Positions 7,576 through 63,152 of a DNA stretch of 64,000 nt are shown here, in pieces. The translations under genes and the position numbers were made by a program. The DNA comes from Pocillopora damicornis (lineage: Eukaryota). The notes beneath the pieces were generated by a model. The model did no database searches. It was not told the origin of the DNA and saw only the letters and a list, made by a program, of their open reading frames with translations. Every line of letters starts with the position of its first letter. Position 1 is the stretch's first letter. Where the stretch lies: contig NW_020843520.1 in the NCBI RefSeq assembly GCF_003704095.1, positions 124,001 to 188,000 on the forward strand. The letters run 5' to 3'.

Positions 7576-10500
7576 TTAAAGCTTATTGTTCCTACCTTCA
7601 CAGCCGTAAATTTCTAATTTGGCGCCAATATAATGGTACCATTGAATGGCTCGTAGTCTGATGTACCTAGCCTCGATGGCCTGAGGCAAAAACTTCCTGC
7701 TTATTTCTGCCCCCTGGGTTTTGTAACCATCAAACACCTGAAAGATGAAATGGAATTAAAAAACTGCACTTTGCATATCATGTAATACTTGCGTTCTCTG
7801 GTTGCAGGATACCATCTTTTTACATTTAATATCACTTCAGTCACCTCTTTGAGAGGCGATCGGGTGGAAAACTGTAGACGAACCTACATAAACGGCACTG
7901 TATCAAGCAGTCAGTTTTCTTGACCCCCGAAATGTCTACCCATAATCACTGTTCACCCTTTTCAAGCGCTCCCCTGTACCGGTGGAAAACTGCAGAAGAA
8001 CCTACTCAAACGGCACCGTATTAAGCGGTCAGTTTTCAAACTCCCAAAATTTTTACCCTCTAAACACTACTCCACCTTTTTCAAGCGGTATCCTCTATTA
8101 AGCGGTCGAGGTTACCCTTGACTGGGTCCCCGACGGCTTATTTGTTATTGTCCTCCACCTGTACTGAACGGTCACTTAAAGCGGGACCAATTAAAAAACA
8201 AAACAAAACAAAAAACTAAAAACAGTCTTTCACGTAAAGTTTAATTTATGTTTAACTCCCGAAATCAACGTTGGTAGTATTTTTGAGGGAGGTTTTGCAC
8301 GTTAAGTGATCAATAATGGCATAAAATGACGTTTCTTATCGTTTCTTCATAATACCCCCATTCTATGGAACCTGTAGCAGCGGTCACCTCCACATTCCCC
8401 GTTTTTACCGCTTAATAAAGGAAATGTACAGGGAAACGACCTCAAACTATGGAGCTAATCTGAAGAAAGAGTAGCTGGGGAATAGACTGAAACAAACTGA
8501 AACCCATGATAGAGCGACAAAAATAACAGCTTCTCAGAGGTGACTCTCACAGCAACGGCATCTTTTAGATGTTCTCAAAAAATGACAAACTGCAGAATAT
8601 GTGTGCATTACTTGTACTAAGAGTTTGAAATTTACCTAAAAGCCGGCCAAAAGAGTAACTGGTAAAATGCATAAGTATCACGTATCAACTCTCCTAGCCT
8701 CTTAGTAAGCAGGAAGTTTGTCACAATGGACTTAGCCAAACGGCATAGCTTGCCTCAAGTCTCCTGTAGCTCAGTGGTAGAGCTTCCAAAGTGTTTTTAG
8801 AAAGGTTATCGGTTCCCAATAAGGGCAATCGGATTTTTTTTTTCCTCCGAATGTGCCTGTGTCATTCACTGAATAACATCTTCTTCCACTTCAATAATCA
8901 GGCTTGATATTAACTACTGTGACCATCTTCATTTCCATCATCATTAAGCAAAAGCGCGATATTCTCATCTTCGCAGTACGCCGGAACTTTGCCACCACGA
9001 ACTTAGTAAAACGACTAACTCTTGCACTAATCTCTTATAGTTCACCTGGCTTAAAAATTTAACATCTCTGTTATCATCATTGTGCATAAGCATAACACAT
9101 CTCACCTCGCAGTATTCTGGGAGTTTTTCCACTATGTACGTTATTTTAATAACCTATGGGAGGCTGTGGTAAGCCGTACCATTTAAAAACGGTAAAGGTT
9201 ACCACAGCCTCTTACAGCTTAGTGATAGAGCGTTAGAAGTTTTATTTTTATCTCCGAGTATGACTGTGTCGTTCACTAAATAATATCTTCCTTCGCTTAA
9301 ATCACCAGACTTATTTTACCAATTTCATTCGCATCATCATTGCATATAAGCACCACGGTGATAAACGGTCTGAAGTACTGATTGAACGGTGATAGATCGT
9401 CTGAAGTACTGATTAGACGGTGATAGAGCGTCCGAAGTACTGATTGAACGATAATTCTCAGCGTCTGAAGTACTGATTGAACGGTGATAGATCGTCTAAA
9501 GTACTGATTGAACGATGATAGAGCGTGTGAGGTACTGGTTGAACGATGATACTGCGTCTGAAGTACTGATTGGACAGTGATAGAGCGTCTGAAGTACTAA
9601 TTGAAAGGTGAAAGATTGTTTGAATTACCGATTGGACGGTGATAGAGCGTCTGAACTTCTGATTGGACGGTGATAAAGCGTCTGAAGTACTGATGGGACG
9701 GTGATAGAACGTTTGAGGTACTGATTGGACGGTTGTAGGTTCGAATCCTAATGGAGGCTCTCGGAGGTTTTTTTCTTTTTTTTCCTTTTTTTGTTTTAAT
9801 TCCGATTGTATAATTCACTGAATAACATCTTCTTTAACTAAAATCACCAGGTTTAAAGATATACCATCTCCATTCACAAAAGTATTAATTATCGAAAGTC
9901 CTATCCTCGCCGTATCCTGGAAGTTTGTCACGATGGACCATGTTTTGCGGCCTAGATGGCCACTAGTTTCCTATAGCTCCGTGATAGAACATCCGGAATG
10001 CTAATCTGAAGGTCGTAGGTTCGAATCCTGGAAGGAGCACTTCAAGTTGTTTGTTCTTTAGGTATGCCGGTGTCATTTATTGACACTGGCATACTCTTTG
10101 AGGGATACTACTATATAAACGGCGCATATTACCGATTGATATGACCTATAAATCCTCGAGACGGGCTCAGTTAAAATATATATTACTACTTTGCTCGGTC
10201 TGTACTTTAATTGATTGTTATTTCCCCTTTTTGTTCTAGCAATACTGTAACTCACTTTCCGTTGCCCTTCAAATATGTAGTCCATCCAGTTGGAGCTATC
10301 GTTGCTGTACTGTAGGTAATACTCTCTTAAACGAGAGTCCTCCTCCATGTTAGGATTTCCTTGAGTTGAAATAGCTGCAATAGTTTTTCTTTTGCCTAAA
10401 TCAACCTAGAGAAGAAAGAGAGCTTTTACATACCTCTTGTCGACCCTCGCCGAGAGATCGCGGGCCTTCTTAGGTAAACAGAATATGGTAGAATTGGTAT

Positions 10501-13500: not shown

Positions 13501-16500
13501 CGAATTTGGTCACCCAGGCCTTACCAACTGTATCTCCAGGAGATGTTTTCTCTTTTCTCTGTAAAGAAACTCGTGCAATGACGTGAATCCGGGTGAATTG
13601 CACTTGTATGAACTCATCCTTAGCCTTTTGACCAGCACACCACGCACCCTTTCCATGATGGCGGTTATGACGTGCATTCCATGGTTCATAACCTTCACCA
13701 AGGTGACTGGAGGCGTTTATAGAAGAATTGCTAACTATTGAAGATTCCATGCCTAGGTCTTCGTCGCAACCTGAGTAAGTCCAACGATAATTATAGGTAT
13801 TATTCATATATTGTTAATCTCTTAGTTTTATCCGTTTTTCTTGTATATAGTATCGTATTTTGTGGCTTTAAAATTCTTCTGTGCTCACTTAATTGGTAAA
13901 TTAAGTTTATGGTCTGAACTCAAGACCGGGAACACTTGATCGTGTGGTCTAACTGTCTGAGTAGCAGTAGTCCTGAAATATGATTCTTACCGACAACTTG
14001 TGCGGAAGTCATCTTTTAAGTCCGATGACTACTTCCGCTCAGGTTGTCGAACAAAAATACTTTCAAAGGATTTGTCACTCTGGAGCTCAGACCACACAAG
14101 CAACTTATTTGGTATGGTAACAACTCAAATTATTGATAAACAAACAATTAAAATTGCTAGTTAACTCGTCCCATCTTATTCTATTCTTTTTGATGTTGAC
14201 TGATTGTTTATTGTCTTCTGAGATGCGAATTCAGGTTAAATAGATGGGCGTAATATGCCGAATTGCTTTATTTTAGACTAAATCTCAACTTAGTTGTTCT
14301 CTTCCTGGTTTCAATTATCTAAGTTTTCCAACCTCTGAGGAAAAGAGCTCTACTTTTAAAAAACTCCTTGATGTCTGTTTGGTGCCTTAGAGACAGCGTG
14401 TCTTTGTATTGGAGTTTCAACGTTCAAAAAGATCAACTGAATGCGAAGACAAAAGATTAGCTGACACTTTTTGATAGGCTGATGAAGAGGACTGAAAATT
14501 TTGGGATTTCTCGAAAATAGAGTCCTTAAAAACAAAAGTTAAGACTACAGTCACCTTTGTAACCAAATACTTGCAGCCTGAGGCAGATTCCATTATGCCA
14601 GACTTTAGCAACAACTCTAAAATAACGAGCTTTGATTTCGTACAAGAAGGCAATCCTCCTAACACTTGCGTTGTCTACATTAGCGGCAAGTTGGGTTCTT
14701 ATGTCTTCATGTCTAAACGCACTAGTGTAAGTAAACCAGTGAGCTCCATCAACACTGTATTCAAGCTCGTATTGTGACACATATTCGTCGTTGCTATGGT
14801 GACCTCGCGTTGCAATACCAGTTAATACGACCGTCTTTCCAAAGTCAAGTTGGAGGTTTTCATTTTCGTTTTCCTGTTCAGCACACCAGGAACCTGTGTC
14901 GGTGAAATTCTGTGCATTTTCCGGTTCGTGTCCAAGCCTACTACTAGAAGCTGACGAAGATGAAACTAGTAAGGGGTCATTTCCGATACCATACGACTCT
15001 AAACATGCTGGAAAGTGAAGAAGCTATTTATTAGAAGGGACTAAAAAAATAAAGCTCGAGGTGTGCAACAACTTCTTTTTCGTGCAAAAAGACAGAGGTT
15101 GTTATTTTGGCGTTTAAATGATGAAGCAAGTAAGGAAATTGCCAAGGTACTTCCGCCAATGTCACCTATTGCATACCTTGCACTTATTGCAAAAAGGTAT
15201 ATATTGGCGAAAGAGGATCACGACTGGGCAACCGATTTCGAGAACTCCTTTGTGACGTAGAAAGGAATGACTAAGACCAGACACTTCGATCTCTTTTTAA
15301 GAAAGGTGCAAAACTCTAGACCAAAATTTTATCTTTCAAACCGGCACTCTTAAACAGACTCTTTTCGATTCAACTTATTTACTCTTATTTTTGTTGTTAC
15401 CATGTTCCCACCAATAGCGAAGCTCCAACACACTCACGACCCATCATTCCTCTATGCGCCCTGACGAAGGGCTAACGCTCGGAAAGTCACCTTGAGGAAA
15501 CTTTTTACAGTGGCCTATTTATATTATCAACTCAGTTGATCAAACCAAATTATCTAACCGTTAGCATACCTTTACAGCCGTAGAGCTCCAACTGAATAAA
15601 TGGACGATTAATCCAGTCTTTTANNNNNNNNNNNNNNNNNNNNNNNNNNNNNNNNNNNNNNNNNNNNNNNNNNNNNNNNNNNNNNNNNNNNNNNNNNNNN
15701 NNNNNNNNNNNNNNNNNNNNNNNCTTTATTTTTCAGAGTTTTACGGAAATTAAATTTCACTTGGGCCAAGGCTTGTCGTGAAGCTTTTCAAGACTTTCAT
15801 TTAGGACAACTTTGGAGGACAATTTACAAAAAAACTACGGAACTCAGCAAAAAACAAATNNNNNNNNNNTGCATATTAGCTCTATCTTATCTAACGAGAC
15901 GACTTTCGTGAACATCACGTTTCAATCAGGCAAACAAGAAGACTTCAACGAATCTTATCGGTTCACTTAAGTCACACACGCGAAAACCGATCAAATNNNN
16001 NNNNNNAACAAGTGAAAACTATCGTACAGATTACAAGATACGCGAATTACTCTTCCTACCCATTTTTTTCTTCACATTCTATTAATCAAAATTTTCAGTA
16101 ATTCTTAAGGCTTTCTTGCTGATCGTCTTAAAAGTAACAGTTTCCAGGATGTAAGGGGAGCAAAAGAGAGAACAATTTTCTGTGTAGTTAGGTAGGCAAC
16201 GTGTCGGCTTTATACTTCTTCCGGCGTGATAACGATATGAGGACAACAATAGAATGGTTTAGCAAGAGGACGGGAACATCATTTCAGAACGNNNNNNNNN
16301 NNNNNNNNNNNNNNNNNNNNNNNNNNNNNNNNNNNNNNNNNNNNNNNNNNNNNNNNNNNNNNNNNNNNNNNNNNNNNNNNNNNNNNNNNNNNNNNNNNNN
16401 NNNNNNNNNNNNNNNNNNNNNNNNNNNNNNNNNNNNNNNNNNNNNNNNNNNNNNNNNNNNNNNNNNNNNNNNNNNNNNNNNNNNNNNNNNNNNNNNNNNN

Positions 16501-19500
16501 NNNNNNNNNNNNNNNNNNNNNNNNNNNNNNNNNNNNNNNNNNNNNNNNNNNNNNNNNNNNNNNNNNNNNNNNNNNNNNNNNNNNNGTTATGTAACAAGCG
16601 CCAACAGAGGATAGTTATAGATACGGCAAGTAAGTTGTTAATAGGAATCCACATGGGCGATTAAACTTAGAGACTATTCCATTGCAGTTTAGTCTCGAGT
16701 TNNNNNNNNNNNNNNNNNNNNNNNNNNNNNNNNNNNNNNNNNNNNNNNNNNNNNNNNNNNNNNNNNNNNNNNNNNNNNNNNNNNNNNNNNNNNNNNNNNN
16801 NNNNNNNNNNNNNNNNNNNNNNNNNNNNNNNNNNNTTTTCTATGATTTATGTCGCTGTCATTTCGTTTCGTGCTACTAGATTTCAGCACCACTCGTTTTT
16901 TTCTACATAATTTTGTAAAGGATAATTTGGAAATCGTCGTCGTTTCTCCCCTTGAATATTCTTCGCAGTCATGACAGGACATCTCTTTTGANNNNNNNNN
17001 NNNNNNNNNNNNNNNNATTTTGAACGGAATTATCAGGAGTTATGGCGAAACCATGTAGAAACCAAGCGACTTAACGATGGAGTTGTTTACCATGAGTTCC
17101 TATTTATCCGTGAAAGAATGAAATTGNNNNNNNNNNNNNNNNNNNNNNNNNNNNNNNNNNNNNNNNNNNNNNNNNNNNNNNNNNNNNNNNNNNNNNNNNN
17201 NNNNNNNNNNNNNNNNNNNNNNNNNNNNNNNNNNNNNNNNNNNNNNNNNNNNNNNNNNNNNNNNNNNNNNNNNNNNNNNNNNNNNNNNNNNNNNNNNNNN
17301 NNNNNNNNNNNNNNNNNNNNNNNNNNNNNNNNNNNNNNNNNNNNNNNNNNNNNNNNNNNNNNNNNNNNNNNNNNNNNNNNNNNNNNNNNNNNNNNNNNNN
17401 NNNNNNNNNNNNNNNNNNNNNNNNNNNNNNNNNNNNNNNNNNNNNNNNNNNNNNATTTTTTTTCATCTCTGACTTCAATTCGCAGAAAAGTTTTCAATCA
17501 TGGTAAAAACGACAATAACAACAAATAACACCGAATAATACAGTAGGTAAACGCCGTGATATTTCATTTTCATACACTTCAACATGAAGCAAGTTTAATT
17601 TATTGATGAATTGATTTATGATAAAATTGACAGCGTCCCATTCTTAGAGTTTCATACAGGATTAAAGAATTGTATCAAAGCACAGGCCTTTCACTGTTTT
17701 AAGCCTTCCTCAATTACATGTGTACTAAGCCCTAAAATCTTGGATTCGAAGTTTGCCAACGANNNNNNNNNNNNNNNNNNNNNNNNNNNNNNNNNNNNNN
17801 NNNNNNNNNNNNNNNNNNNNNNNNNNNNNNNNNNNNNNNNNNNNNNNNNNNNNNNNNNNNNNTGACTTTGCTTTCTTCCTTTTTTGTTCTAGATCTTCGT
17901 TTGTTAAATTTCATATTTTCATGCCCGTAAAAGTGAAATTCTGCGGTTTTTTTTAGCAGGGAGCTTTGCTTCCGTCTTTTGAAGTGGCGTCCATTGTCAT
18001 TGAGAATTAAAGGTAGTCCATCTACAGTAAGCAATGACACAAGTTGGTCGCAAAATATTATTTAATTTGATCTTTCATTCACCTGCAGTTTAAAGGGACA
18101 AGTTTGTGCAATGGCACTCGAGTGAAAGCTGGTGAACAGCCAAATTGCAACTGTTAAGTTATCTAATCGACCGACACATAAACTCTTCACGTTACCTTCA
18201 CGGTGCCGTCCTCCATGTAAGAGAAAAATTCACACCCGTTCCTACTGTAATTTAGAACAAATTTGCTAATCCAGTCAATATGGGAGGAAGCAAAATTTCC
18301 TCGTACTGTTATAGCAGTAACTGATTTGCCTCCGGGCCCAAGGTCAACCTGAATGTACTCGTCCACTTCAGTAGGTAAAAGGAATATGTCTAGTTTGTTT
18401 AATCGAGCGTCGATTGCGTCATAATATGTACCACTTGTGACCAGTGCATGGTCTGGAATGTCATAGTTTTCCATTCCAAGGGGATTTTCACAAGCTAAAA
18501 GAAAAATGCAAATCAGAATATTAGCCATTTTTTTCTATCAAATAAAGTGTTTTGGCTGTTCAATATTTAAACGATGCTATCTGACTAAGGATTAGTTATA
18601 TGAAATATTAATATTTAATACAGCCATCAGGCCTGAAAAACATCCTACATACGCAGCAAAGGTTAAATTGCTCCATACAGAAGTTGCGCCAACGTGCATT
18701 TTATGTTCTTGTTATTTCAATTTGAAAAAAAAGGAGTTTAAAAGTTACAGTATTGTAACCTTAACGTTATCAGCATTCCTAAAAGCATCAAATACTCAAT
18801 ATCCTTTACGAAAATCATGCTACCAAGCCAAGGTTACTCTTATATTATAATCATGTCGGGCAGTTTTTCGTCTCAGTGCAAATGATGACGGTGTTCTACC
18901 CACCTTGGCATCCGTATAGCTCCATTCGCATGCACATGTGACGATGATAACTTTTGGGAAAAATTCTGAAATAGCGTCCAATTATCGAGACTTCCAAAGA
19001 CACAGTTCTAGACTCGTGGGGATTTGAATTACCACGAAACACCTTGAATTTGAAAAACAAATGGTTGGACTGAAATCGTTATTATGTTCAAAGTTTTTTA
19101 TAAGTTCAAACAACTTATCTTCACCCGAAAAGGGTTCTCAAACAGTGTCAAATAGCGGAGTGTTTTCATAAAATCTTAGTGATAATGTTCTTCAAAGTCA
19201 TTTGAATATTCATATTCTGTTGGAATTCGAAGTATTTAATATTTCAAATAAATTCATTGTTACCGACCTAACACCCTAGAGTTGACGCACTTTTGTATTG
19301 CTTCCTGAGAAGTTAAATATTTTTTGACATCATTAAATCGTCTCTTCCAAGTTTGACCGAGAGAAGGCAAATCAAGACCCGCCCATCCCCACCCCGCATC
19401 TTCGGGTGGAGCTCCAATTTATTCCAAAGGTATTTGGCCTACGTCGCCAGGAACTTTGTTTTCGTTTCCTTCCTGGTTACACCTCTTCTTGGCGCCGTCG

Positions 19501-39884: not shown

Positions 39885-41407
39885 TTATGCAAATGCATCG
39901 GCCTCGTTATCTGAAACACTAAGTTCGATGGAGCAATCGATTTCGTGGCCAAGGTAGAACGTCATCACTTCTAACAACTTTGCATCAGTCTCATAATCAG
40001 CAGAGATACAGATGGCGTGCCACCGCTCTACAAAAGAGAGCTCCGAATCGGCGACATCTTTGTCCAAAGTTTGCAACGATTTTAGCCTTTCCTTCAGCAA
40101 ATTACGCTGTTCCTTTAAAACAAGGAGGTTTTCTTTGACACTCTCAGTTTTAACAGTTTTGTTTCCCTTCTCTTTAGATTTCCTCCAGACCTCGTCTCCG
40201 GCCTTAAACTCAGAGTGATCACCGAAGAAAGACTTTAAATAACATAGAAGAAAACCAGCCATTTCGTACTCTGGGGAGTTCTCATCGATTTCAGCATTAA
40301 CTTCATTGTAGGTGTCCATAATAACAGCCAGAATCATGTTGATAAGGAAAAATTGCATAGTTATCACAAACATAGCGAAAAACAAAGGACCGAGGACAGC
40401 CTCCGAATCGCTCAGCTCCATAAAGTATGCCTTCCCAAGCGTCATAGCCAGTGTAGTTTCACAGGTCGTTATGAAGTTGTTAAAACCTTCGACCCGGCTT
40501 CCGAAAACAACGTAAGCAAAGATATTAAAAGCAAAAATCGTGAGTAAGACTTCCATTCCCAGCGGTAGCAGCTCTACTGCGGCACGAGAAATTGTATGCG
40601 AAAGGACAGCAATGTGCCGGTTAAAGCTCAGCAGTTGGAGAAACTTTAACGTGGCGATGAATACTATGGCACCAATGACGTAAGTGCTAACTTCGTCCCA
40701 CTTCATTGCATAATGAAAGCTTACGAATACAAATGGGTTCTCCTGAACTTTTGCGATTGTCCAGTTTGCGTTCATCAGTCGGATGAAGAACAGTGCTATA
40801 GCAGAGATGGATAGCCCAATCTGCGCAGCATCGACAACATTCCAAGCCTTCTTGAAAAATCCTTTTCTCTCCCTAGAAATCTTCTTGCAAGCCACGTAGA
40901 GAGCTATTGCAACAGTCACAATGGCCACAAACTCACTAAATGCAACCGCTGCAGTCCAGGGGCCGATATGCTGATAAAGTCGGAAAGTGTCCACTTTCAA
41001 ATACGTTGAAGAGCCCCCGGTACCTGTAAACTCCACCAAGTAAGTAACACTGCTAAAAAGATTGGCTGGAGCATTGAACACACTAAGCTCGACAAAGATT
41101 GCACGTGTGAACTGATCAACCCATTTGTAGGTCTGTAAGTCACTTATCACTTCTCTAGCCTGCTCCATGAAGTAACCCAGGTCAGCAGTATATCCTCCGC
41201 CACTGTAAATCGTTTTACTACCCCAAAAAGGCAGTCCGTCCAGTTTTAGAGCTGTTTGGTATCGCCATGAAGCCGGACATGCCGAATAGCTCAAGTCGCC
41301 TTTTTTTATCCATCCAGGTAAATAGAAATCTTTTTCCTCGTCAATAACGGAGTAAGAACCACTGCAACTCATGTTTAGGTCTTGGGAGTATTCACTTTCA
41401 CAGTTTA
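39885..41407 (-). CDS. Terminal exon: TOP domain, PKD channel TMs and C-terminal coiled coil
   Basis: WRYQ...YSGGGY...[17 protein letters not shown]; WNVVD; LLSFNRHI; LGPLFF...[15 protein letters not shown]; heptad-like [23 protein letters not shown]; stop at 39885-39887. Confidence 0.9.
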
Positions 41408-50400: not shown

Positions 50401-53400
50401 TCCGGACAATCAATTTCCTGTTTACATACCTGGACGTCGATTTTTGTGGTGTTGTATGTGCCGTGAGCATCGATTACTTTCACTTGCAAGTTCAAGGTAA
50501 AGTTCTTTTCCACATCACCGAGTGGTAACTTGGTAACAAAAACAGGTGAAATATCATCATACAAGAGAAACACGACCCCGTAACGCGTGTAATACATAAA
50601 CTCGTACGACAATGGAAGATCTTCGTCAGCCCATTCCTTGCACTGGAACAAAAACGAAGTCTTGTCTGAATAGCCTTCAGATTTGTCAACAAAGCAACTT
50701 CCACCACGAGGTGGGATATTGACATAGAAGTCCAACTCACTGTATCCATCCGCTCGACCATGCATCATTCCAATAACAGACACCTTGTAAGACCTCCCAG
50801 GCTTAAGAGTGTTCTCAAGGAAATAGATATGATTAACATTTGATGCATCGGTATCTTTGAATTTCGTCCAGGCAAATGTTTCTCCTTCTTCAATTTTCTC
50901 GTAGACACTCCATTGGTATCTTTCTTGTAAAGTGTTAAGTGATTCCAAGGGGTCAATTTGGGCTTCTAGGAGAAATCTTTCCGCAGCGTTAACAGTTGCA
51001 CCACAGTTCCGTTTGCACCTAGTGAATACATTTATTTCAAAGTCACGTGAAACATGTGGTCGTCTGTTATAGTGATATTTTTAAGGAATTAACTGTTCAG
51101 CTAAAAAGGTACACTCTACAGATGGTGAACTCTTCAGAGCGAATTTTACATTAGATACAATCAATCTTTACCACAGTATCTCTACCTCTAGTTTTTTTTT
51201 TTTTAATTCAAATTCAATAACTAGCCCAAGGAAAAGCCTTAGGAAAAATTATATAGTAAATTATGATCGTATGGAATTTAAAATAGAAATTGAACTAAGC
51301 TTTGGTTTATTGACAGGACGTATCACAAAAAAACTTGCTTATAAACTCGAAATATGATAGTGCTTTGAAGGTATCTTCTTACCTGATTTTGATAACTGGT
51401 GGATCTCCATCGACAATCTTTACCACCTGAGTAAAGCTTGAGATTCGAAAGTGATTATTCACTGTCTTGGAGACAAAAAGGGCCACTGCATAGGAAGAAT
51501 GCAACCCAAGTGTGCCTGTGTGAATTTCAATGGACGATCCGCCCTTCATTAAAGTTCCGTTTCTTGATCTATGGCAGAAAGTGGATGCATTGTAATCAGA
51601 GACATTAAGAAGGTAAGTTTCGCTTGTCATGGACATTAAATCTTCCTGTATTTCCCAGGAAGCATTTTGACAAAGCCAGTAGTACTGTAAATTGGGTTCA
51701 GCGTCATCAGGGTCACGGGAATCCGAACCGTCCAGTAAGTAGGGCTTACCAAAGGCTTTTTGAATGAGACTCCCTCCTTCGATTATTGCTATCAAAACAT
51801 TGCCTTGTATTTCAATGAAGCCTTCTTCAATGCTGTACACATCGTATTGTTCTCTCATACTGACATTACACCTAATCATATATACACCATATGTCAAGGT
51901 CTTTTTCTGTATAGTTAGCTCCTCGAGTTTCTTGTTGTCTGGGTTAAGAACGGTATGGGCTCCAGATTTATCCTTTGGCAAAGATGACACCTCAGAAACA
52001 GTCCAAATGATATCTTTTTGATCAGTTGCCTTGCAATCGATTTTCGTAATAAAAACACGAAAACGAACCACCTGTAATGGAGTGAACACTGTTCGAGAAT
52101 TTATATCTTTTTTAAACTCTGGTACTGTTATGGTGGGAAAATTGCAAGGTATTTTTACCACAAGGGCTTTGTCCTGTAGGAAGGAACGAGAAACACGATT
52201 CCACGCTGTCACGCTTACATCATAACTTCCCAACGAAGAGTAGTTGTAGTTGATAGAAAAATAATTTCCAGCGAAGCCTAAGAATCGTACCGATACGTTT
52301 TCATGGCTGCAGTCTTCGTGACCAAACCCAAAAAATGTTCCATCACCAAGATTAACAACAAAGCAGGAATTCGTTCCTCTTTCTTCTGTTGATATGTTAA
52401 AAACTACCATTTCATCGATTTGCCTCGGGCAGTTGTTGGTGAAAGTTAGGCTTTTAATTGCTTGCTGTACCGTAACAGTTGCTTTTTGGACTATAAAGCC
52501 AAAGTTGTTTGAGCAGTTAATGTTTACGTTGAAAACATTTATTGTTTTGTAAACATGGTAGATCAATGAACTGTTTTGAAAAGAAGATGTTTGAATGAAA
52601 CTCCCATCTCCAAAATACCAAAAGCATAGATACGGAAACCCTTCACTGACATTTAGGATCATCAATGCCGGCTCTGTAACGTTGGCTGAAGAAACCTCTA
52701 GAGTTGCATTACCAAGTGAAAAGACTTTTCGGACATTTATAACAGTTCGTACCTGATACGCACTTATATTGTTGTAAACAATTACGCTAATATTTTTCAG
52801 TCCACTTTGCGGATAATTGTACACCAATTCTGTTGATCTTTGTGTAAGATTTATTCCATCGCCCAAAATAAACAAAAATTCCGGGTTAGAACCATCAGAT
52901 ACATTCAATTTTATTTCAATACTGTCATTCTGGTATATGTTATCAAAGGGCCCAAGATTCTTGATAAGCAAACACGAAACATTGACTGGAATTTCAACTA
53001 TAATTTGTTCAGATATTGTGATGCTGTTCAACTCATTCATGGCCATTATGATGACGTAGAATACTCCCAGGCCAGTGTAGATATGAGAATTATTTCTCTG
53101 TAGGACTTTTTGAACAGAAGAAAATGAATAAGTTTCTGTCGAGTTGTCTCCATAATCGATCGAAAAACGAACCATTGAACCCGTATCGATTTTCCAATAA
53201 ATTAAAAAAGTATCCCTAAATGAAATTGCGTTAACTTTTTTGTTCACCACAAAACCTGTAATAGCATCCTGCACCAGGATAAGGCGTCTCGTTATGGTGT
53301 GATTTTTAGCTTGTAAAACTAGTTCCACAAAGCCAGTTTTGTTGTAAATATGTTCAATTTCGCAGAGCGATGTGTTGGTTACGTTGCAATCCCCAAAATC

Positions 53401-56400
53401 CAAACTCACAACCTCCCGACCGCAGTTTTTGATCCTGATAACAACCGGAACTTCTTTTACTACAACGGAAGGAACTGTTACGTCGAGTGCTGAAATTTCA
53501 CAGTAGGTAAATTATTGTCAGTAGTCAATTTTTTTCAATAGAGTAGTAGATAAATTTGGGTCATGATCACTAACAACTCGAATAAATTGGAAAAAAAATT
53601 ATTCTATAACATTCACATTCCAAGCTGAAGATTTAAACACTTTAAATTCTTACTTTAAAGTATGGAAATTCAGTTATCAGCGTTGAATCTCCTTGCTTTA
53701 CAATTGAATTAAAATTACTGTTAATTATTTTTGTGTTCAACTGTCTTCGTGTCATTTGAGATGATACGCTGCACTTGGGAGAAATAATATGACTCAAATT
53801 CATTAAACTAAAATCTGTTTATAAAAAATGAAATAAAATGTATAATTTTCGAAAAGGAAATAAACATTACTTTTCTTTTCAGGGACGGCATGCAATTTGA
53901 TTAATTCTTAGCGAGTTGTTTAAATTCTTGTTGCAAACTCAATTTTCAAACTTCCAAGTGGTTTGTAGTGGACACAAAGCCCCATTCGATCTCTAAAGTT
54001 ATAGTCCAATAAATGGCAGCATACTAAACAAGCTGATGGCCGCTCTACATGTAGGTCAGCTTGTATTAGGATAACTGCGGTCTTGAGTATCGTCCGAGGC
54101 AGTTAATATTTTCTCGGTATGTACCTACATAGAGGTATAAAATTTATCTTTATTCACTTGAAGTGTAGTCATAGTCCCACCTGGGCAAATGTGTGTATTA
54201 CAAATCGCTTCCTCTTTATCAGCTCCCAGTGATGAGCAGTCTTTACCCCCATTCTCGGGCTCAGGATTGTCACAGGTGCGCTGTCGATACTGAAAACCTC
54301 CTGCACAGGTAGCACTGCACGTCGACCAAGCCGACCATTCGCTGTACCCACCATCCACGAGATTAGCTAGTTTCGAATCAAAACGAAAAAAAGGCAAAAT
54401 TATACTTTCTATGTATTTTTTGCGTGTCTTGTTCACCAAAGATACATTCGTCATATTATCGGAGAAGCATTGAAAATTAGAATGAATTGCGCAGCTACGA
54501 ATAAAAAATTCGTATTTTTTACTTCCAGTTTAAAAAGTAAAAGAATACCCAAGTACTTTCCAACTCAGAGTAACATTTTCCATTGATTTTAATGCTGGTC
54601 CCAAAGTTATTAAAGGAATGTACTCTTTCGTTAACAGCTGAAGGATTCTTAATGAGTAAGTAAACCTCTGTTCTCCAAAACTGAAGCATTAAATATGATT
54701 TCATTATAGGAAAAGTATAATTGTTTTTGTAATTTCATTTTGATTACAGATTATACCTTAATATATTGAATATACAAAGACTGAATTAAACTCGCATCAC
54801 CAAAATAGTGGAGAAGGCAAAAATAGGGACGTGAAGAAATGATAACAATAATTGTAACTTGCCATCACATCCGAAAAGTTCCACTCTCATGCATATGTCT
54901 CGATGCCATGACTTCACCTCAAGCCTGACAAACTGTGCATTTTTAACGCCATCAAGACTGTGTGTAACCGTAGCAAACTGGTCGATATTCCCAGAGAAAA
55001 CCTGTTAATCCATTAAATGCAAGACAAATATTAGATATTCAGGTTACTCTAGACCGACTAAAATAAATTAATAAATAAATAACAACAAATTAAACACAGC
55101 TTCAACTCGCTGCGGCAGAAACCCTTACAATGAACTCCCTCCGTCGCTTCGATTCTACCAGCCTATCATAGTAAGGTTAAGAAAGTCAAGGCAACACGCC
55201 TTGGTATTATGGGGGTCAGAGTCTTCCTGGATGATCAGTTTCGAAAAAAGTTGGGTTAAACCACTGTCAGGGACAAGTTATACTTCACATTATTCGTCAC
55301 TGGCTCGCGATGGGATTCAGGATAAATTTTGGCAGAGGTAGAAATACGTGTTACTTAATCCAGGATGTTTGAGTGAGGTCTTCGCAGACAGAAAGGAAAG
55401 TGTTAAAAAAGAAAGGTAATAAATATTGAAACAGAATTCACTGTCGTAAAAGAAATGTCTAAGAGACGTGAAGAAAAAAAAACACTTCATGGAGACAAAA
55501 ATAGTGCGAGAATACTGAATAGGGCAGATTTTAAGAGAGAAATGAAGAACTACATCCACCCAAGTGACGCATGACGAGTCAGACGCAAACCATGAAATAA
55601 GCCATGCGAGAGTCTTTTACGACACCATGCGATAAAGTATGCAAAATGTCTAAGAACACGAAAAATATGAGTTCATTTGACTTGATACCTTGGTAGATCC
55701 ATTAACAGTATAAGGCTGAGGAGTAAGTCCTTCCTTTTCCCAATAATACAACGAATATTCCGTGACCCATTTTCCATCTTTATCATGTTTTCCCTGAGTG
55801 GATATTCCGGTAAGCATTTTACTATGTTTCAGGTCAATCTGCAGATACTCTCCTGTGATATTTTTCTCGGCGCACCAGCTTCCATTCCCAATCAAGCGAT
55901 TCAGTCTCGCATTCCAAGGCTCGTTGCTCATACCGTAACTACTCGCTGTGAACGAATCGCTCAACAATTCTCCATTGTTTACACCAAGAGGGAAGCCGCA
56001 AACTATGGTTAAACAAATGAATATATGAATAAGGTTAAGACGGCTGGCCTTGTCATGTGTTTTCTTCCATATAATTCTTTCTTCCCCTTTTTGATCCATA
56101 AAAACGCAAAAAAAGAACAAGAGAAATAATCAGCCATCTTCATCGAAGACGCTTGGGATATACGTAATAGATTTTGATGGCCAAAAGCTGGCTTCGGGCG
56201 TTTTTATGTGAGCGGGTACAAAGCAATCCCCCTCCCTGTTCCCCCTCCTTCCCCTTTTTCCCCTTCTCCTCCCCCCTCCCCCTGCACTTGCGTAAATAAC
56301 CATCCATCTTTCCCAAACTGGGAGCCAATCAGATCATAAGCAGCTTCATGTCAAATAATTCATGCTGTTGGGTCTCAATCAAGTATTCAGTCACTAAATG

Positions 56401-59400
56401 ACTCAGATAATTACTCAGTCAGACAGTCAATCCGTCTTTCAATCAAACAATCAGTTATCAATCATACCTTGGTAACCATATAGCTCGACCTTCATGCACA
56501 CGTGATTGAACCACGTGACAGGCAGAAATCGGATGTAGCGAGCTTCAATTTCTTTATTCATCTGTTGCTGAACAATGCCATAATCATTGGTGTTCCCCTG
56601 GAAGAGCTGAAGTGAACAACAAAAAACCTATACATTACAATACTGAGACACGATATATAATTTCAAAATATCTAAGACAAAGTTCAATGAATTTTCATCC
56701 TGAGAGGTAGCAAATGATGGTTAGTTTCCAATTTTTGTGTACATAATATGCCCCAATGACATTATTATGAGGTAAGAACTAAAATAACGAGGCGTACAAG
56801 TGATTTGATATTCAACTGCACTAATTATTTCATTTTCCTATCACCCTTTCACTTTCCTCTTATTCTATTCCTGATAATTCCGACGCAAACAGGTGCAAAT
56901 TTTAATTTAAAAAGCACGAGGAAATAGACAACTTGATGACCTATCAAAACCAAAGTTAAAACCTCGATAATACCTTCACTGAGTCATTTTCCTCGTACTT
57001 GTTCCATTCAGACCCATCCAAGCTGTGGGACAAATTAAACTGAGTCACCCAGCAGCTTTTATCTGTCCGATGACTTCCTTGAGTGGCCACGTGAGTGATG
57101 TTATGAGTAGTACCCAAGTCAATCTGTAAATACTGATCGTGGCTGTCTTCTCCTGCGCGCCACGCTTCGCTCAAGAAGCCTACATCCAAGCGGGCCCGCC
57201 ATGGTTCGTTGCCACTTCCAGCATGACTGGATGCAGTTATGGCTGAATTGGCAATCTTGTGTTTTTGTATTCCAAGAGGTATACTTCGATCTTTCGATTT
57301 TAACAAGAAATCGATAAAAATGGCTTTAAATAAAAGTACACGATGGAATGAATAAAGAGTAATTAAGTTAAAAATACACGAGCTTGCTGTGTTATAAAAA
57401 ATTCAATAGTCAGGAAACGTTACTAATAATTAGTTTAGGGCATACGCAATTCTATTTCAATCATTTGAAAAGAGGAAAAACTGTAAGGTGAAGCCATATT
57501 GTAATCATTATCTTATGACCGTGCACTTTTGGTAGATGCAAAAAATACTGACCAACGGTTCGTATGTCAAATCGCATGCAGATATGTCCAATCCAGCTGA
57601 CAGGATGAATCCTGATAAATCGCGCCCTGACTTGTTTCATAAATTTCCGAGTGACAATGGATGAGCTATCGTTATTTCCCTGAAAGACCTGGTAAATGCA
57701 AATGAAATAATCATTTGTCAAAAATACAACAGTTTTTTGAGTGAATGGATTAGCGAGTTTTTTCCGTGGCCGACCGATCTCCAAACATAATTATATCTAT
57801 AGGATTTGCCTTCACAGCATTTACCTTGCTAGAGCCATTCTCTTCATATTTTTTCCACAAATCATAGGAATGACCATACGAAATCGTATAATTCTCAACC
57901 CAGGACTCTTCAACAACTGCCCCCTGGGTTATGATCGCCTCAATGTAACTATTTCGCTTCAGATCAATCTGGAGGTATTGCATCTCGTCATCGAACTCAG
58001 CGCACCACGTTCGCCTAATACTGAGTAAGCAGTCTTGCGGTGTCAGCGGATATCGGGAGCTTGATGCGCTGATGGAAACATTAGCTTCCACGAGCAACTC
58101 CCCTCCTTTAGAAAAGAAAGCAATGGAAGATCAGGACATAACATAAGATAAAGTACAAGAGAGGTGGTATGACACTTGCTGCTATAAATTAAGACTATAT
58201 GCATGGAAAAGGCTATGGTCAGCCCCTTCTCTCAGCTCTTTTGGCATTCTGGTCTGTTCATTCCATTCACCTCCTCATTCCCTCCCTATCTCTCCCGAAA
58301 GACCAGCAGTTAGAATTTCGCGATAAAATCGATTTTGGAGCTAATGTCTTTGATCGGGAAATAATTCTATGTACAAACCTTATAATACTCTTTCTCCTTT
58401 TTTTCTTAGAGTTGAAACATTGTCTCACCTTTTCTGATGCCATAAATTTCCACCCTCAGCGCAGGAGAAGTGGTATCTAACACCCAGCGAGTCAAGAGGA
58501 ACTTGACGTAACGAGTGTAAAATGACCGGGTAAACACGTGACGTACAGGGAGGTCTGTTTCGTCAGGGGTATTACCGCTGAAAACCTGCTTAAAGAAATG
58601 ATATGGCCTTCAAATCATTCGAGAAAGAAAGAAAAAAATCTTCTAGACTGCCAGAGGCGATTTCCTTCGACATTTTGAATGTGCAGGAAGGAATCAGAGT
58701 AGTTTTCCTTACTTTACTAAAGCAAATTGTCAATTATTGGATGACATGAAAAAGTATTGATAATAACTTAACATTGTATGAGAAGAATTTAGATGAGTTA
58801 AAGATGACCTATTTGGCTTTTTACTACCGTTCAAACTATTACAAAATTTGGGAAACTTAAACTACAGTGCATCTTTAACTTTTCGTTTATGGATGGCAGC
58901 TACGTGTATTGCTTTTCAAAAAAACTCTGTAAGATAGGGAGTAAATGAGACATAATCATACCTTAGGGCCCCCTCCCTCTCGATAATAATACCAGTCTGC
59001 ACCATCATCGCTGAAGGACAATTTATACTCCAGCACGTGTCCGTATTTTTCGATAACCTTGTTGTTACATCCCTGCGTAGCGACTCCACTTACGGACACT
59101 AAACCTTCACCCAGGTCGACAAGAAGAAAGTTTTCACCTCTTGGAAATACCCAACATCCCGCAGTACTATGTAACCTAGCCATCCATGGTCCGTGCACCT
59201 CAGTATCCAAGTAAATGTCTGAAGCTAAAATGCTATTGTTAGGAATTCGATAGTCGCTCATTCCTAACGGCTTCAAGCTTTCTTCATCGAAATCTAAAAT
59301 GGCAAAAAATAATTCAAAAGTTCAAAAATGTCACTACAGAATATTAACAATAAGGTGAAAGACCTAGAGTCACTTCAGTCCCAAGTATTGTGCTATCGTC

Positions 59401-62400
59401 TTTGGTTTGCGTAAGAATCTATGCCCATTGATTCTTGCGAAAATGCAAGGAAATATAACGGCGCCGTCTGGATATGGGGAGAAACCTCTGCTTTTTTAGA
59501 CAAGTCGCTTTTGTCAGTGTTCACTTTTTGGTGGTGAGGATTCATTTGGACATAGGAGAACACTTTTACTCCGCCGATAGAGGAATCAGATGGCGGTTTT
59601 ATAAAGGACCTCAATTAGGAAATCATTCATAACCCGGATTAGTCTTACCTTTGCATCCGTATAACTCGACTCTTATACATGCAAATGTGTGCCATTTCTT
59701 AGGATGAAGACGAATATATCGCACATTGGAAACATTATTGAGCCTGTTTTTGACTATCGACGTTCCATCTGAGTTGCCTGGAAACAACTAAATCATAACA
59801 ACAAATAAATTCTCATTTTCCTGGCGGATATGAGGCTCATAGTTAATTAGCTGGAATAAAATAATGAAAAGTACATTTCAATATCAAACTGTTATCATCT
59901 TTTTTTTCTATCTGCACAATCACAAGTGACGTTATGTGTTTGAAAAACTTTCCTGAGTATTTCGCCGACAAAGTTAAACTTGCATATGTGCATGGACACA
60001 ATTATTTTGCTGCGGTCGCGATAACCAGCTTGAAGCAATTATTCAGGCTTTGCTTGTGTCCGGAGGCAGTCAGTAAGTTTAGGTAACTGTACAAATCAAT
60101 TATATTAGCCTTGCTGAAAGCAGTTATTATTTTCTGATTTGCAGCGAAAGAGGTATCTTAATAACTCACTTTTTCTGTGCTATTCTCGGAGTATGGAATC
60201 CAAGATAAAAGTTCTTTGCGAAAGTGCAATGTGTACTGCTGTACCCAAGCGCTGTTGTTCGAGCTGTGGAATCCTTGGGTGGCAATAAATCGTAATTTGT
60301 ATGGTTTCGCAAGGTCCACCTGATAGATATAAGTAGAAGTTCAGGTAAAAATTATTTTAAAAACTTTGCGATGGGTGAGATGCACATTGAATTATAAAAT
60401 AAGTATCTTTGTCTTTTCCATGTTTATTATGTTTAGGCTGGAAAGAAGTTATCATTATTTTTGCATTCACAGCACATATGGCTAGCAAAATAACGGTAGA
60501 TAAAAAAGATAGAAAACACAGATCATAGATCTAGATCATATCTTGTGTGACATTAAAAACACTTCGTGAAACCAAATGGATCACATGAGATCATAAACTG
60601 TTTACAAGCTCTTGTGGATTGTCATTTCACTACTTCCACCATTCAAATGCACAATTCAAAGAAAGAGAGGTGTCGTACATATAATTTCCTCTTTCAAAGC
60701 TCATTCGCTTAGGTCAGAATACAGAAGAAACTATTGATAGTTCCATCTAACTTCAAAATCGTTTTCCGATAAACCTCTACGGTTCTTTTACTTTACGCCT
60801 TTTATAATATTTGCCAGACTTTTATTCGTCCAAAACTTCTGCTTTTAATATAGCACATGTATATACAGTAAATATACACTTATTTGACGCAACAAAAGTT
60901 TTGACCTATTCTGCACTAACAGTAAGATAATTGACTAACTTGTAAGAAAGGCTGAGTGTCGTTTTCGCTTGGGCACCAGGCCCCTCTACCATCGAGGCGT
61001 GCCATCCATGGGTATCTGCGTGAAGACAGGTAACTAGAGGCGGTGAAAGCAGGGTCCTTTATTACCCAAGTTCCGATTCCGATTTCGTCGGAACATACTG
61101 AAAGAAAATTATTGTCTTTGCTAAATAGTGATGAAAAGCTACGTCAAAAAAGTTGTGTATTTGAAATTGGTTGGCCACCATCTCTTATTGCTGTGCACAG
61201 ATCATATATCAACTCATAAATTTTTTATGTAATACTTAAGGCCCATCACCACCTTTTGGAATTGCAGATTCATGCATCTCGCAAAGGAAATCTCCTAAAA
61301 CAAAAAGACTAAAGAGCAAAGTGATTGGAGTGAACATCAGTTTTCAATAATCTTGTGAGGAGTGAATTTCAGAGCAAATATCAACAGTTTATCGCACGTT
61401 GCACACTTTGTCATAGTGGCTATCGATCGTGATGTATAAAGGGATAAGTTTCTAAAGAAACTGTGGTGATGCGTCGGTGGGAGAGTATGGCAGGTAATTT
61501 AGTGTTAACAACTGAGTTGAAAACGTAAATTAGCCACCGTAAAGGGTAAAAAAGCTGACGTTTCGAGCGTTAACCCTTCGCCAATCGCTCTGACGAAGGG
61601 CTAACACTCGAAACGTCAGCTTTTTTACCCTTTACGGTGGGTAATTTACGTTTTCAATTCAGTTGTTAACACTAAGTTACCCGATTGTGATGTATAGTCT
61701 ACTAGATAAGTATTACCTTTGTCGCAGCCATAAAATTCAAGTTTTAAATTGGCCCCTAAATGCCAATTCTCAACGCGGATCTTTATAAATCTTGCTTCTA
61801 GCTTCTGTTCTGTTTTAATAGTCACCACCATGTTTTTCATCTCTACACCCAATATTTTCTGCATGAAAGACAAGCATTAATTGAGCCAAGATGACGAACG
61901 TGCTTCATAAATCTGACAGCGCAGAAGACGATCTTTCAAGCTAATTTACAAGTAAAGCAAAGACCTTGATAGGTTTAATTTGTTTACCCTTTAAGATAAC
62001 ATGTAGCAGCCGTTGCACAATACGAATAGATTAAGTTTTAAAAAACCGGTGACACGAAATTAATAGCCATTTCATTTTGAGGTTGTGCTGCGGACCTGGA
62101 AGCACGTTGCCCAATGATATGTAATAATTGACGCAAAATTGTGAAAATAGAAAATATTGCGATACCCTACCACCAATTATAACGGACTGATAATCAGGTG
62201 ATCTTCATCTCTAAATGTGCATTGTAATTATGAAATTTGGTGGTCAAATGAATGCAGCACAGATGACAAATAGCATGACATGCTGGCACCATAGTGTTTG
62301 GAATAGAGTTACTAACTTACAAAGTGAACAAGTTTAAAAAACAACAACGACAACAACGACTTGAAACAACAAATGACACCGAACAGATATTGGATATTAA

Positions 62401-63152
62401 AAAAAATACAAACGAACAAAAAGGTGTTTGTTTATCAGCTGGCTTTAACATAACAGATCCTAGAAATATGATATCAAAAACCTCCTACTATCAAGGCGAG
62501 ATATTTACCCCACTTATTCCACGAGGTTCATAAATTGTCCACGGGTCTCGAGTGCTCATCCTGTAGTCCAAGAAAAAATATTTCAGCCAATGGTTCTTGA
62601 GAGAATCTCCTTCCATCTCGATGTATGTTATGGCTTTTGACTCTCCAAGATCTACCACAATGTATTCTGAAGATGCCACAGATGATGGAATCCAACCCGA
62701 ACCAGATCCTAAACGAGCGCGCCAGGGTTCTCCGCCCACTTTGAATGACGAAGCTTGAATGTCGGAGTCTGGTATGAGACCACTGGCCATTCCCAGTGGT
62801 TCGGCACACTCTAGAAGTTTGCAGCTAATTAGTGAATATTGCAATATCGAGCTTCTTTGACGATAAGGAGAGCGTTTAACCACTCTCTGCACAGCGAATT
62901 ATTGTTTCACTATTAGACGGCAACCAAAATGGTTTGCGTAAGAGTTATTTGTTTGCAGCAATTAAAAATAAAACAGTTTTTTGTGTGCGTTTGTAAATAA
63001 ATTCTTATTTTACCATTACATCCATAGAACTCCACACTGATATGTGGTGTATGATCCCAAGTTTGAGGGTAGAGCCTGATATAGCGTGATGTAATTTTCT
63101 TAGGCAGCGGCCGGCGTAAAGTTTGATAACGAGTTATGCAACCTAGAAAAAC
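39885..63152 (-). CDS. Polycystin-1-like (PKD1/PKD1L family) receptor-channel with N-terminal discoidin array + TSP1; 5' end lies beyond the window
   Basis: Exons: discoidin 63152-63014 (second half only); 62810-62509, 61858-61717; 61097-60940, 60319-60170, 59787-59649; 59293-58962, 58585-58429; 58105-57825, 57688-57553; 57290-56974, 56606-56468; 56002-55689, 55001-54863; TSP1 54366-54181; PKD repeats/REJ 53489-51383; REJ 51018-50430; 49345-49157; 48716-48591; 48398-48138; 47789-47544; GAIN/GPS 47233-46505; GPS+TM1 44735-44505; PLAT+TMs 44008-42626; 41771-41603; TOP/channel/C-tail 41407-39885. Phases chain without a frameshift. Confidence 0.85.
42100..42334. repeat. Palindromic repeat of the same family as 61493-61681, with hammerhead-like core
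   Basis: tattatcaact..ttggccaccgtaaagagttt..tgacgtttcgagcgttag / ctgacgaaaggcggacgcccgaaacgtcagc..cggtggccaatttacgttatcaactcagttgataat. Smaller fragments of this family lie at ~5657-5715, ~15457-15555 and ~49770-49820. Confidence 0.75.
42626..44008 (-). CDS. PLAT/LH2 domain and TM2-TM6 region exon
   Basis: [30 protein letters not shown]...FTRGSTNEF...LTVWHDLSG...SWYL...FACDHWLA, followed by HLWISV...[10 protein letters not shown] typical of polycystin-1 proteins. Confidence 0.9.
44505..47233 (-). CDS. GAIN/GPS domain and first TM helix exons
   Basis: Joined sequence [21 protein letters not shown]|[22 protein letters not shown], followed by hydrophobic [29 protein letters not shown]. Confidence 0.9.
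45588..45762. repeat. Hairpin (MITE-like) repeat
   Basis: Inverted arms gagttacggatgcac..ggaagtttggagagca / tgctctccaaacttcc..gtgcatccataactc. Confidence 0.7.
51383..53489 (-). CDS. PKD repeats and start of REJ module (large exon)
   Basis: Repeated DFGD/DYGD/LGDG/WYFGDG...H.Y...G.Y.V motifs, followed by REJ-type IEGG...[10 protein letters not shown]...YYWLC. Confidence 0.85.
54181..54366 (-). CDS. Thrombospondin type-1 repeat exon of the polycystin-like gene
   Basis: [41 protein letters not shown]...CNTHICP shows WxxWxxCSxTC and RxRxC. The exon is phase 1-1. Confidence 0.9.
54863..63152 (-). CDS. Discoidin (F5/8 type C) array exons of the polycystin-like gene (6 complete domains + 1 partial)
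   Basis: Examples: [40 protein letters not shown]...YLQIDLG...[14 protein letters not shown]...WCAEK...YLQIDL. Second-half exons end in CMRVELFGC or CMKVELYG. Confidence 0.85.
61493..61681. repeat. Near-perfect ~90-bp-arm palindrome (Penelope-terminus-derived) with hammerhead-like core
   Basis: Arms ~61493-61583 and ~61591-61681 are reverse complements. The + strand has gct-CTGACGA-agggctaacactc-GAAA-cgtc-agc at 61587-61620. Confidence 0.8.

Follow-up and report, generated by a model that had tools for sequence, protein, structure and literature searches.

A probable discoidin-armed polycystin-1 receptor gene and its old discoidin-only neighbour in the coral Pocillopora damicornis

The window analyzed here is a stretch of 64,000 nucleotides from the stony coral Pocillopora damicornis (contig NW_020843520.1 of assembly GCF_003704095.1; C155:124001-188000), which encodes on its minus strand two genes rich in discoidin (F5/8C) domains, designated gene 1 and gene 2. 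It is probable that these are two adjacent, co-oriented and independently transcribed genes, gene 1 encoding a discoidin-armed polycystin-1 receptor and gene 2 a secreted discoidin protein, and that both are old neighbours, with neither derivation of one from the other nor coupling between them shown. A first-pass annotation, made from the sequence, had placed the stop of a PKD1-like gene at 39885 and the ATG of the next gene at 37484, both on the minus strand, and Pfam matches, RNA contigs and the reading frame agree with this arrangement. It had furthermore proposed that the two genes form a paired system, and this part fares less well.

All searches were performed exon by exon, and exons were joined only in local scripts for frame checks and domain trees. 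Pfam matches were read from long minus-strand open frames, and the domain map was made with own hidden Markov models (HMMs) for the A exon and the B exon, the pair of exons that makes up most of the discoidin domains. The curated cut-off of the F5/8C profile PF00754 is 28.2 bits. Genome-wide searches covered the 234-Mb assembly with its 4393 contigs. RNA contigs from four libraries of four studies, all of whole-colony material, were placed on 35150-41149. For parts past the window end C155 coordinates are used.

Domain architecture of gene 1

By its domain content gene 1 is a predicted member of the polycystin-1 family (PKD1, PKD1-like or REJ). The last exon (39885-41372) matches PF20519 (E 1.3e-27), PF08016 (E 5.7e-42) and also Ion_trans. 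Upstream of it Pfam recognises a PLAT domain (E 1.6e-12 at 42524-43891), REJ on two exons (E 1.4e-25 and 8e-28 at 50349-50948 and 51379-53409) and PKD repeats (E 5.2e-19 on the frame 51379-53409). The orthologue P0210, an mRNA-derived protein of 2501 aa from another coral, is about 60% identical and collinear with gene 1 over ten exon blocks from 53439 to 39900, and it contains PKD, REJ (7.8e-70), GPS, PLAT, Polycystin_dom and PKD_channel. A Kyte-Doolittle scan of gene 1 yielded 1, 3-4 and 5-6 helices on three exons, i.e., about 10-11 in total with the exon 41559-41816 not scored. The TAA at 39887-39885 is the stop in use, since one RNA contig covers 41149 to 39338, this codon included, without splicing. 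P0001 (L001, 1.8 kb) and P0152 (L025) were considered as spliced contigs and rejected, as they are short or genomic.

The GPS of gene 1 is divided by an intron. Its first half lies inside the exon 46505-47233, and the motif C-x-C-x-H-L-T-x-F opens the exon 44505-44735, with a hydrophobic helix directly after it in the translation. Pfam gives a weak match on the split exon (E 0.006, 46466-47158) and E 2.5e-9 in the spliced orthologue P0210. Cleavage is expected between L and T of H-L-T. The description of gene 1 as a cleavable, discoidin-armed polycystin-1 receptor in the first-pass annotation thereby holds for the array and for the canonical GPS H-L-T, while "cleavable" applies at the level of the motif.

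Upstream of the PKD exon follow a TSP1 exon and, within the window, six full F5/8C domains (D1-D6), which are 52-69% identical to their positional orthologues (support 100/99). Pfam TSP_1 was found on the same open reading frame (ORF) of a 98%-identical contig. The junctions from the D6 B exon to TSP1 and from TSP1 to the PKD exon are in frame and in phase 1, the second with the donor CAG|GT. The D6 donor at 54861 reads G|GCAAGT, likely that of a GC-AG intron, and D6 has the sole B exon of both genes that lacks a GT donor. The features of gene 1 are:

39338..39884, minus: 3' untranslated region (UTR) of at least 547 nt with AATAAA/ATTAAA at 39449 (RNA contig, which ends at the repeat boundary)
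39885..41372, minus: last exon with Polycystin_dom, the six-helix PKD_channel region, the C-terminal tail and the stop TAA at 39887-39885 (Pfam, RNA contig)
41559..44008, minus: PLAT and middle transmembrane helices, exons 42608-44008 and about 41559-41816 (Pfam, tblastn of P0210, hydropathy)
44505..44735, minus: second GPS half, then first transmembrane helix (translation, hydropathy 2.69)
46505..53491, minus: PKD repeats and REJ, exons 51382-53491, 50427-51020, 49151-49348, 48576-48716, 48138-48353, 47529-47789 and 46505-47233 (Pfam, P0210 exon map)
54181..54346, minus: TSP1 exon with phase-1 joints to D6 (upstream) and to the PKD exon (downstream) (WSxWS...CSxTCxGG motif, in-frame splice sites)
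54861..62871, minus: six full F5/8C domains (Pfam on exon, HMM map, orthologues), as follows
D6, minus: A 55656-56063, B 54861-55004 (HMM map; Pfam F5_F8_type_C at 55650-56120)
D5, minus: A 56965-57360, B 56466-56621 (HMM map)
D4, minus: A 57795-58121, B 57554-57703 (HMM map)
D3, minus: A 58959-59315, B 58430-58597 (HMM map)
D2, minus, with split A exon: A 60934-61110 and 60164-60331, B 59647-59784 (HMM map)
D1, minus: A 62497-62871, B 61718-61870 (HMM map)
63012..63158, minus: B exon (C-terminal third) of domain dZ (own B-exon HMM, E 2e-13; polypyrimidine tract and AG precede it)

The upper limit given in the first-pass annotation, 63152, is not where gene 1 begins and turned out to be the start of the dZ B exon. 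The corresponding A exon lies past the window end, 230-530 bases away (C155:188227-188532), and two more discoidin units are located farther upstream, another full domain (dY) and then a conserved B-only exon (C155:191256-191393). In total gene 1 comprises at least eight full F5/8C domains and one conserved half-discoidin (B-only) exon and reaches about 3.4 kb beyond the window end.

Gene 2, the intergenic space and further neighbours

Gene 2 begins 2.4 kb downstream of gene 1 on the same strand. Its joint 35405/35590 is present in contigs from three of the four RNA libraries, and two of these libraries also show the joints 35764/36673 and 36701/37446; all are GT..AG, and the contigs end at 37551-37575. 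The frame from the ATG at 37484 is open (given a one-base ambiguity at the joint) and encodes a hydrophobic N-terminus of 23 residues (hydropathy 2.62), directly followed by the first discoidin domain. Judged by hydropathy this N-terminus is signal-peptide-like. At 37551-37575 one of the gene 2 RNA contigs has 23 extra 5' letters that lie off the examined stretch; they may come from a 5' UTR exon farther upstream or from an error of assembly.

The exon profiles recognise 14 F5/8C domains in gene 2, possibly 15, as listed here:

36673..37575, minus: first exon from 37446 to at least 37575 (ATG at 37484) and a micro-exon of 28/29 nt at 36673/4-36701 (GT..AG joints, RNA contigs of two studies)
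18193..35764, minus: discoidin domains D1 to D11 (Pfam on exons, HMM map), as follows
D1, minus: A 35590-35764 and 35259-35405, B 34239-34391
D2, minus: A 32952-33359, B 32374-32526
D3, minus: A 31724-32086, B 31201-31353
D4, minus: A 30037-30492, B 29594-29734
D5, minus: A 28786-29112, B 28348-28503
D6, minus: A 27790-28218, B 27344-27484
D7, minus: A 26718-26864 and 26093-26290, B 25205-25345
D8, minus: A 24437-24562 and 23780-23944, B 23175-23330
D9, minus: A 22475-22810, B 22266-22406
D10, minus: A 19814-20161, B 18902-19057
D11, minus: A 18193-18531 only
15568..17862, minus: gap-broken stretch with a B exon that is cut by the gap 15624-15723 and readable at 15568-15621 (last 18 residues)
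7576..15014, minus: last three domains (exon profiles), as follows
Single-exon discoidin domain, minus: 14553-15014 (82 bits against PF00754)
Penultimate domain, minus: A 13409-13810, B 12858-12986
Final domain, minus: A 12292-12501 and 10235-10405, B 7594-7749

After the final B exon gene 2 continues for seven codons to the stop TAA at 7578-7576, and AATAAA/ATTAAA is found at 7337. Up to this stop the exon profiles revealed only discoidin exons in the readable sequence, the gapped stretch excepted. As a signal-peptide-like start and 14-15 F5/8C domains make up the product, with nothing else seen, it is predicted to be a secreted, multivalent discoidin-only protein. Assembly gaps at 15860-17862 sit between the A exon 18193-18531 and the gap-cut B exon, with a weak B-like piece at 16906-16968 (E 0.41) in the gapped stretch; because gaps break the sequence from 15.6 to 17.9 kb, one further domain may be hidden there. 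The gap at 12658-12793 is intronic, 65 nt 3' of a gene 2 B exon. The secreted neighbour with 14 discoidins of the first-pass annotation is thereby recovered in its discoidin-only content, its signal-peptide-like start and its 14 domains, with the reservation that the gaps may raise the count to 15.

The D1 domain of gene 2 (35259-35764 and 34239-34391) is 75-83% identical to its orthologues, compared with 63-76% for the channel exon of gene 1 and 47-77% for D2 of gene 2. Judged by this conservation, D1 is probably the functionally most constrained part.

Between the genes lie repeats:

37576..39337, no strand assigned: intergenic repeats (no RNA contig across, no Rfam family)

In the four libraries no RNA contig joins gene 1 to gene 2, and only repeat-derived contigs were placed within 37576-39337. 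Since nothing else bridges this stretch, the two genes are separate transcription units, as had been anticipated: the RNA contigs give gene 2 its own 5' exons and gene 1 an unspliced end. A search of the intergenic stretch against Rfam returned no family. In the four libraries the summed RNA-contig depth is about 900-8800 at 38150-38349 (also at 37950-38150 and 38950-39550) versus 2-18 over the genes on either side; the contigs there have numerous loose ends and odd joints, and the stretch looks like a high-copy transcribed repeat.

Further genes flank the pair. An ankyrin-repeat frame of 374 aa (2472-3596, minus; Ank_2 1.9e-12) lies 4 kb past the stop of gene 2 and is probably a separate gene. 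On the other side, a single-exon ORF of 741 aa of the RING/B-box (TRIM-like) type is located between gene 1 and a third discoidin array (L002:6034-8256, plus, corresponding to C155:194034-196256). Next to it is the ORF of a rhodopsin-type seven-transmembrane (7TM) receptor, a G protein-coupled receptor (GPCR), on the same strand as gene 1 (L002:8896-9999, minus, corresponding to C155:196896-197999). The third array (L003/L004; C155:200213-216672, minus) is upstream of this GPCR and counts at least 11 A exons together with their B exons. This upstream array (C155:200-218 kb) was considered as part of gene 1 and rejected, because the GPCR gene, which is conserved in place, intervenes.

Relationship of the two arrays and their conserved neighbourhood

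Both arrays are built from an A exon (about 110 aa) followed by a B exon (about 45 aa), and the B exons end G|GT in phase 1, D6 of gene 1 excepted. Exons of both genes score 32-51 bits against PF00754, and half-domain exons lower, as expected. The bracketing cysteines are seen as C..PLG at the start of most A exons and as YGC.G at the end of most B exons, and in a few domains one of them is missing. The first-pass annotation was therefore correct in that one exon cassette underlies both genes, but the cassette is common to the F5/8C family of the whole genome. At least 996 candidate F5/8C exons were found genome-wide, many of them in arrays of more than 100 kb, next to 80 PKD channel domain matches (PKD1-type and PKD2-type pooled). 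Across the genome, Pfam F5/8C matches break off at positions 82-90 of the 127-position profile, and A/B pairs of this kind also make up unlinked arrays, so that the cassette is a property of the whole family.

The pairs of domains that had been cited as related between the genes are 34-42% identical, which is a range shared with hundreds of unlinked exons. In a genome-wide search with D3 of gene 1 the top non-self matches are on other contigs, and the cited partner at 29108 is eighth among them with 34%. For the second half of D2 of gene 1 the top genome match is indeed the cited partner in gene 2 (26102-26269), ahead of a domain of gene 1 by 0.6 bits. D5 and D6 of gene 1 match hundreds of exons at 31-46%, with exons of gene 2 or of the upstream array among the first five and not set apart. 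An identity comparison of 67 domains, for which the A and B match columns were aligned and 157 columns kept, gave a mean of 30.2% between the domains of gene 1 and gene 2 (maximum 41.4%) and of 30.7% between gene 1 and unlinked domains (maximum 40.0%); within gene 1 the mean is 29.9% and within gene 2 it is 30.2%. Positional orthologues between corals are 47-83% identical, all but one pair at least 52%, so that any common origin of the arrays predates the split of these corals. D7 of gene 2 is the best gene 2 partner for five of the eight gene 1 domains and is thus consensus-like and no specific counterpart, and the best partners between the two genes are not collinear.

The careful maximum-likelihood (ML) tree recovered every positional orthologue at 100/99 or better. 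It contains two moderately supported cross-gene pairs, D2 of gene 1 with D7 of gene 2 (90/63) and a domain of the upstream array with D4 of gene 1 (88/81). A quick tree had paired D3 of gene 1 with D5 of gene 2 (SH-aLRT, an approximate likelihood ratio test, 82), and the careful tree dropped this pair. The split between "local" and "unlinked" domains has a bootstrap of 3, and the approximately unbiased (AU) test did not reject a single clade of all gene 1 domains (p=0.075). The interleaving of the domains of both genes that was expected of a per-domain phylogeny is therefore present in the best tree, weakly, next to a single gene 1 clade that stays acceptable. An extra intron common to D2 of gene 1 and D7 of gene 2 was considered and rejected, as it lies at profile position ~80 in the one and ~70 in the other. 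Since identity, tree, AU test, intron positions and non-collinearity show nothing specific, the cited likenesses between the genes are best read as family-level motifs. The proposal that gene 2 arose by partial duplication of the receptor ectodomain is not borne out by the equal identities, the non-collinear partners and the AU test.

Several other PKD-channel loci of this genome have a discoidin exon on the same strand 12-21 kb upstream. In the careful tree the three sampled discoidin exons near channel loci (C2873, C4382 and C14) group in a separate clade (98/93), which argues that the gene 1 array is not a simple amplification of a single channel-locus domain. In the region C1535:87-283 kb (L009-L014) PKD_channel exons are intermingled with discoidin exons along about 200 kb, and the discoidin domains fall into sets of near-identical copies (branch lengths of 0.03-0.3); the region looks like a cluster of polycystin-like genes with discoidin domains that were duplicated recently.

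The linkage of the two genes is old. Orthologues of the gene 1 channel exon, 76%, 71% and 63% identical, were found on long contigs of three other coral assemblies, and in all three a discoidin gene follows the channel exon on the same strand at distances of 5.0, 6.8 and 16.6 kb; P0199, with only 3.6 kb downstream, is uninformative. The first domain of this downstream gene has a split A exon like D1 of gene 2 and groups with it at 100/100, and orthologues of D2 group at 100/99. A divergent coral keeps the order 7TM receptor (62% identical), B-only exon (57%), dY, dZ, D1-D6, TSP1 and PKD/REJ, with the domains matching one to one and the split of the D2 A exon also present. The TRIM-like ORF was not seen at this locus of the divergent coral, where the GPCR is kept. 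The arrangement of array, TSP1 and PKD/REJ was also found on a Tara metagenome scaffold (56% identity). The synteny expected by the first-pass annotation is thereby found in all three other coral assemblies, and it extends to the GPCR neighbour. Blocks of conserved gene order are common among stony corals. As the unrelated upstream GPCR is also conserved in place (62%), the linkage carries little weight for function.

Some points weigh against two old neighbours of the kind described here. The continuity of the gene 1 array with PKD/REJ would follow from in-frame sites, one of them with a GC-AG donor, and from the conserved arrangement. The first exon and a signal peptide of gene 1 were not found, and protein searches with the channel exon and with P0210 gave no full-length annotated coral orthologue of gene 1, the results being exon-sized coral fragments or distant medusozoan and bilaterian proteins. 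Same-contig exons, from gene 2 or the upstream array, are within the top five in three of four genome-wide searches, the best tree groups most domains of gene 1, gene 2 and the upstream array on one weakly supported side, and the background of this tree is a sample of 20 other loci of this genome.

The array at 54.8-63.2 kb might be a separate discoidin-only gene, with the polycystin gene starting at the TSP1 or the PKD exon. No RNA support was obtained for the D6-TSP1-PKD joints, P0210 starts inside the PKD exon (its contig being 5'-truncated), and the D6 donor is a non-canonical GC. This is nevertheless improbable given in-frame phase-1 junctions with a strong GC-AG consensus (G|GCAAGT) and good acceptors, inter-exon gaps of only 0.5-0.7 kb, neither start codon nor signal peptide seen at TSP1, and the same arrangement in two divergent corals; moreover, other polycystin-1-like proteins have an N-terminal F5/8C domain, e.g., the amphioxus protein P0036. 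Less probable still, and hardly to be expected, is one long transcription unit that joins gene 1 to gene 2 by read-through or splicing. The shared strand, the at most 1.8 kb from the end of the 3' UTR to the first exon of gene 2 and the 23 unplaced letters at the 5' end of one gene 2 contig would fit such a unit, but in gene 1 the last exon continues without splicing past the stop and over at least 547 nt of UTR, gene 2 owns a 5' exon with an ATG and a signal-peptide-like start, and no contig of the four libraries bridges the two.

More weight has to be given to the origin of the arrays. A distant common local origin of the two arrays is possible, and the fuller scenario, in which the arrays of gene 1 and gene 2 and the third upstream array go back to one ancestral array at this locus and either exon shuffling brought cassettes from a neighbour into the polycystin gene or gene 2 represents a partial copy of great age, deserves to be kept as a tentative alternative, although the evidence inclines against it. 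The interleaving of the domains of the three genes in the best ML tree, with the pairs at 90/63 and 88/81, the over-representation of same-contig exons among the top genome-wide matches and the phase-1 borders on all cassettes would be in line with it. Mean identity to unlinked arrays is equal, however, D3 of gene 1 has its best matches on other contigs and is placed among unlinked arrays by the careful tree, gene 1 monophyly is not rejected, the local/unlinked split has hardly any bootstrap support, the partners are non-collinear, and the extra introns of D2 of gene 1 and D7 of gene 2 are at different profile positions. A module of receptor and soluble partner, with gene 2 as decoy, opsonin, ligand-presenter or tether for gene 1, appears unlikely. 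The head-to-tail neighbours are kept in all three other coral assemblies, both genes are transcribed in the same whole-colony libraries, and D1 of gene 2 is at least as conserved between corals as the channel exon. Against this, an unrelated GPCR is equally conserved in place, so that the linkage looks like general microsynteny, the two arrays have no specific sequence relationship, and adjacency is expected now and then with both families hugely expanded. Slightly less likely again is the specific version of a two-component stony-coral module, in which the secreted protein with 14-15 discoidins would bind a ligand of particulate or matrix nature, such as a microbe, a symbiont, the coat of a gamete or the skeletal matrix, or present it to the eight-discoidin polycystin arm, and thereby couple multivalent surface recognition to cation signalling.

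The reading as two adjacent but independent genes would have the following consequences. By analogy with its family, gene 1 would be cut at the GPS and kept on the surface as a two-piece receptor, its discoidin array would bind a glycan, lipid or matrix ligand, and it would signal with, or as, a cation channel subunit. Gene 2 may encode a secreted multivalent discoidin protein of lectin, agglutinin or matrix type. Both genes belong to a very large and anciently diverged coral discoidin family built on one phase-1 exon cassette, which makes exon shuffling easy, and both are probably old neighbours inside a block of conserved gene order. The ligands of polycystin-1 receptors are poorly known, and a conserved coral member led by eight discoidins and TSP1 has an uncommon architecture, which points to glycan, lipid or matrix recognition and is testable with recombinant domains. 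The phase-1 cassette, with about a thousand copies, illustrates shuffling into receptor genes. A paired system would matter if true; at present it is based on a neighbourhood that represents general conserved gene order.

Comparison with known systems

Gene 1 shares with the polycystin-1 family, i.e., human PKD1, PKD1L1-3 and PKDREJ and sea urchin suREJ, the PKD, REJ, GPS H-L-T, PLAT and polycystin domains and the six-helix C-terminus, and the best full-length relatives found are annotated as polycystin-1 or REJ-like. The ectodomain of human PKD1 contains LRR, WSC, C-type lectin and LDL-A domains and that of suREJ C-type lectin and EGF domains. Gene 1 is unlike both in having eight and a half F5/8C domains plus a TSP1 repeat in its N-terminal ectodomain. 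PF00754 is listed in none of 32 long relatives of P0210, and among the 150 best channel-exon representatives F5/8C occurs in one, the PKD1L2-like protein P0036 of amphioxus (XP_078669286.1). Like gene 1, P0036 has an N-terminal F5/8C domain (E 4e-25), REJ, GPS, PLAT and the channel. Unlike gene 1, it contains just one discoidin domain, after which come C-type lectin, PAN and fn3, lacks array and TSP1, and is about 32% identical in the channel exon.

In corals, skeletal PKD1-related proteins were reported (Acropora millepora B8UU59; A. digitifera aug_v2a.02830) that possess PKD, REJ, GPS, PLAT and about 11 helices, and shedding of their ectodomain upon cleavage has been proposed (PMC3748352, PMC4890752). 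These proteins are described with WSC, PKD, REJ, GPS and PLAT, with a discoidin array unmentioned (PMC4890752), and are set apart from gene 1 by this description. Equating gene 1 with them was considered and rejected because of the WSC-type ectodomain. With 80 PKD channel domain matches in this genome, the skeletal protein is probably another paralogue. The literature search gave no paper in which coral polycystins are connected with discoidin arrays.

Within the same genome, other multi-discoidin arrays (e.g., C2308, C847, C2019 and C4228) use the same A/B cassette and are 30-45% identical to the domains of both genes. They are unlinked to the locus, and some consist of recent, near-identical tandem copies (branch lengths <0.1). 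Unlike these copies, the domains of gene 1 and gene 2 are each old and individually conserved between species.

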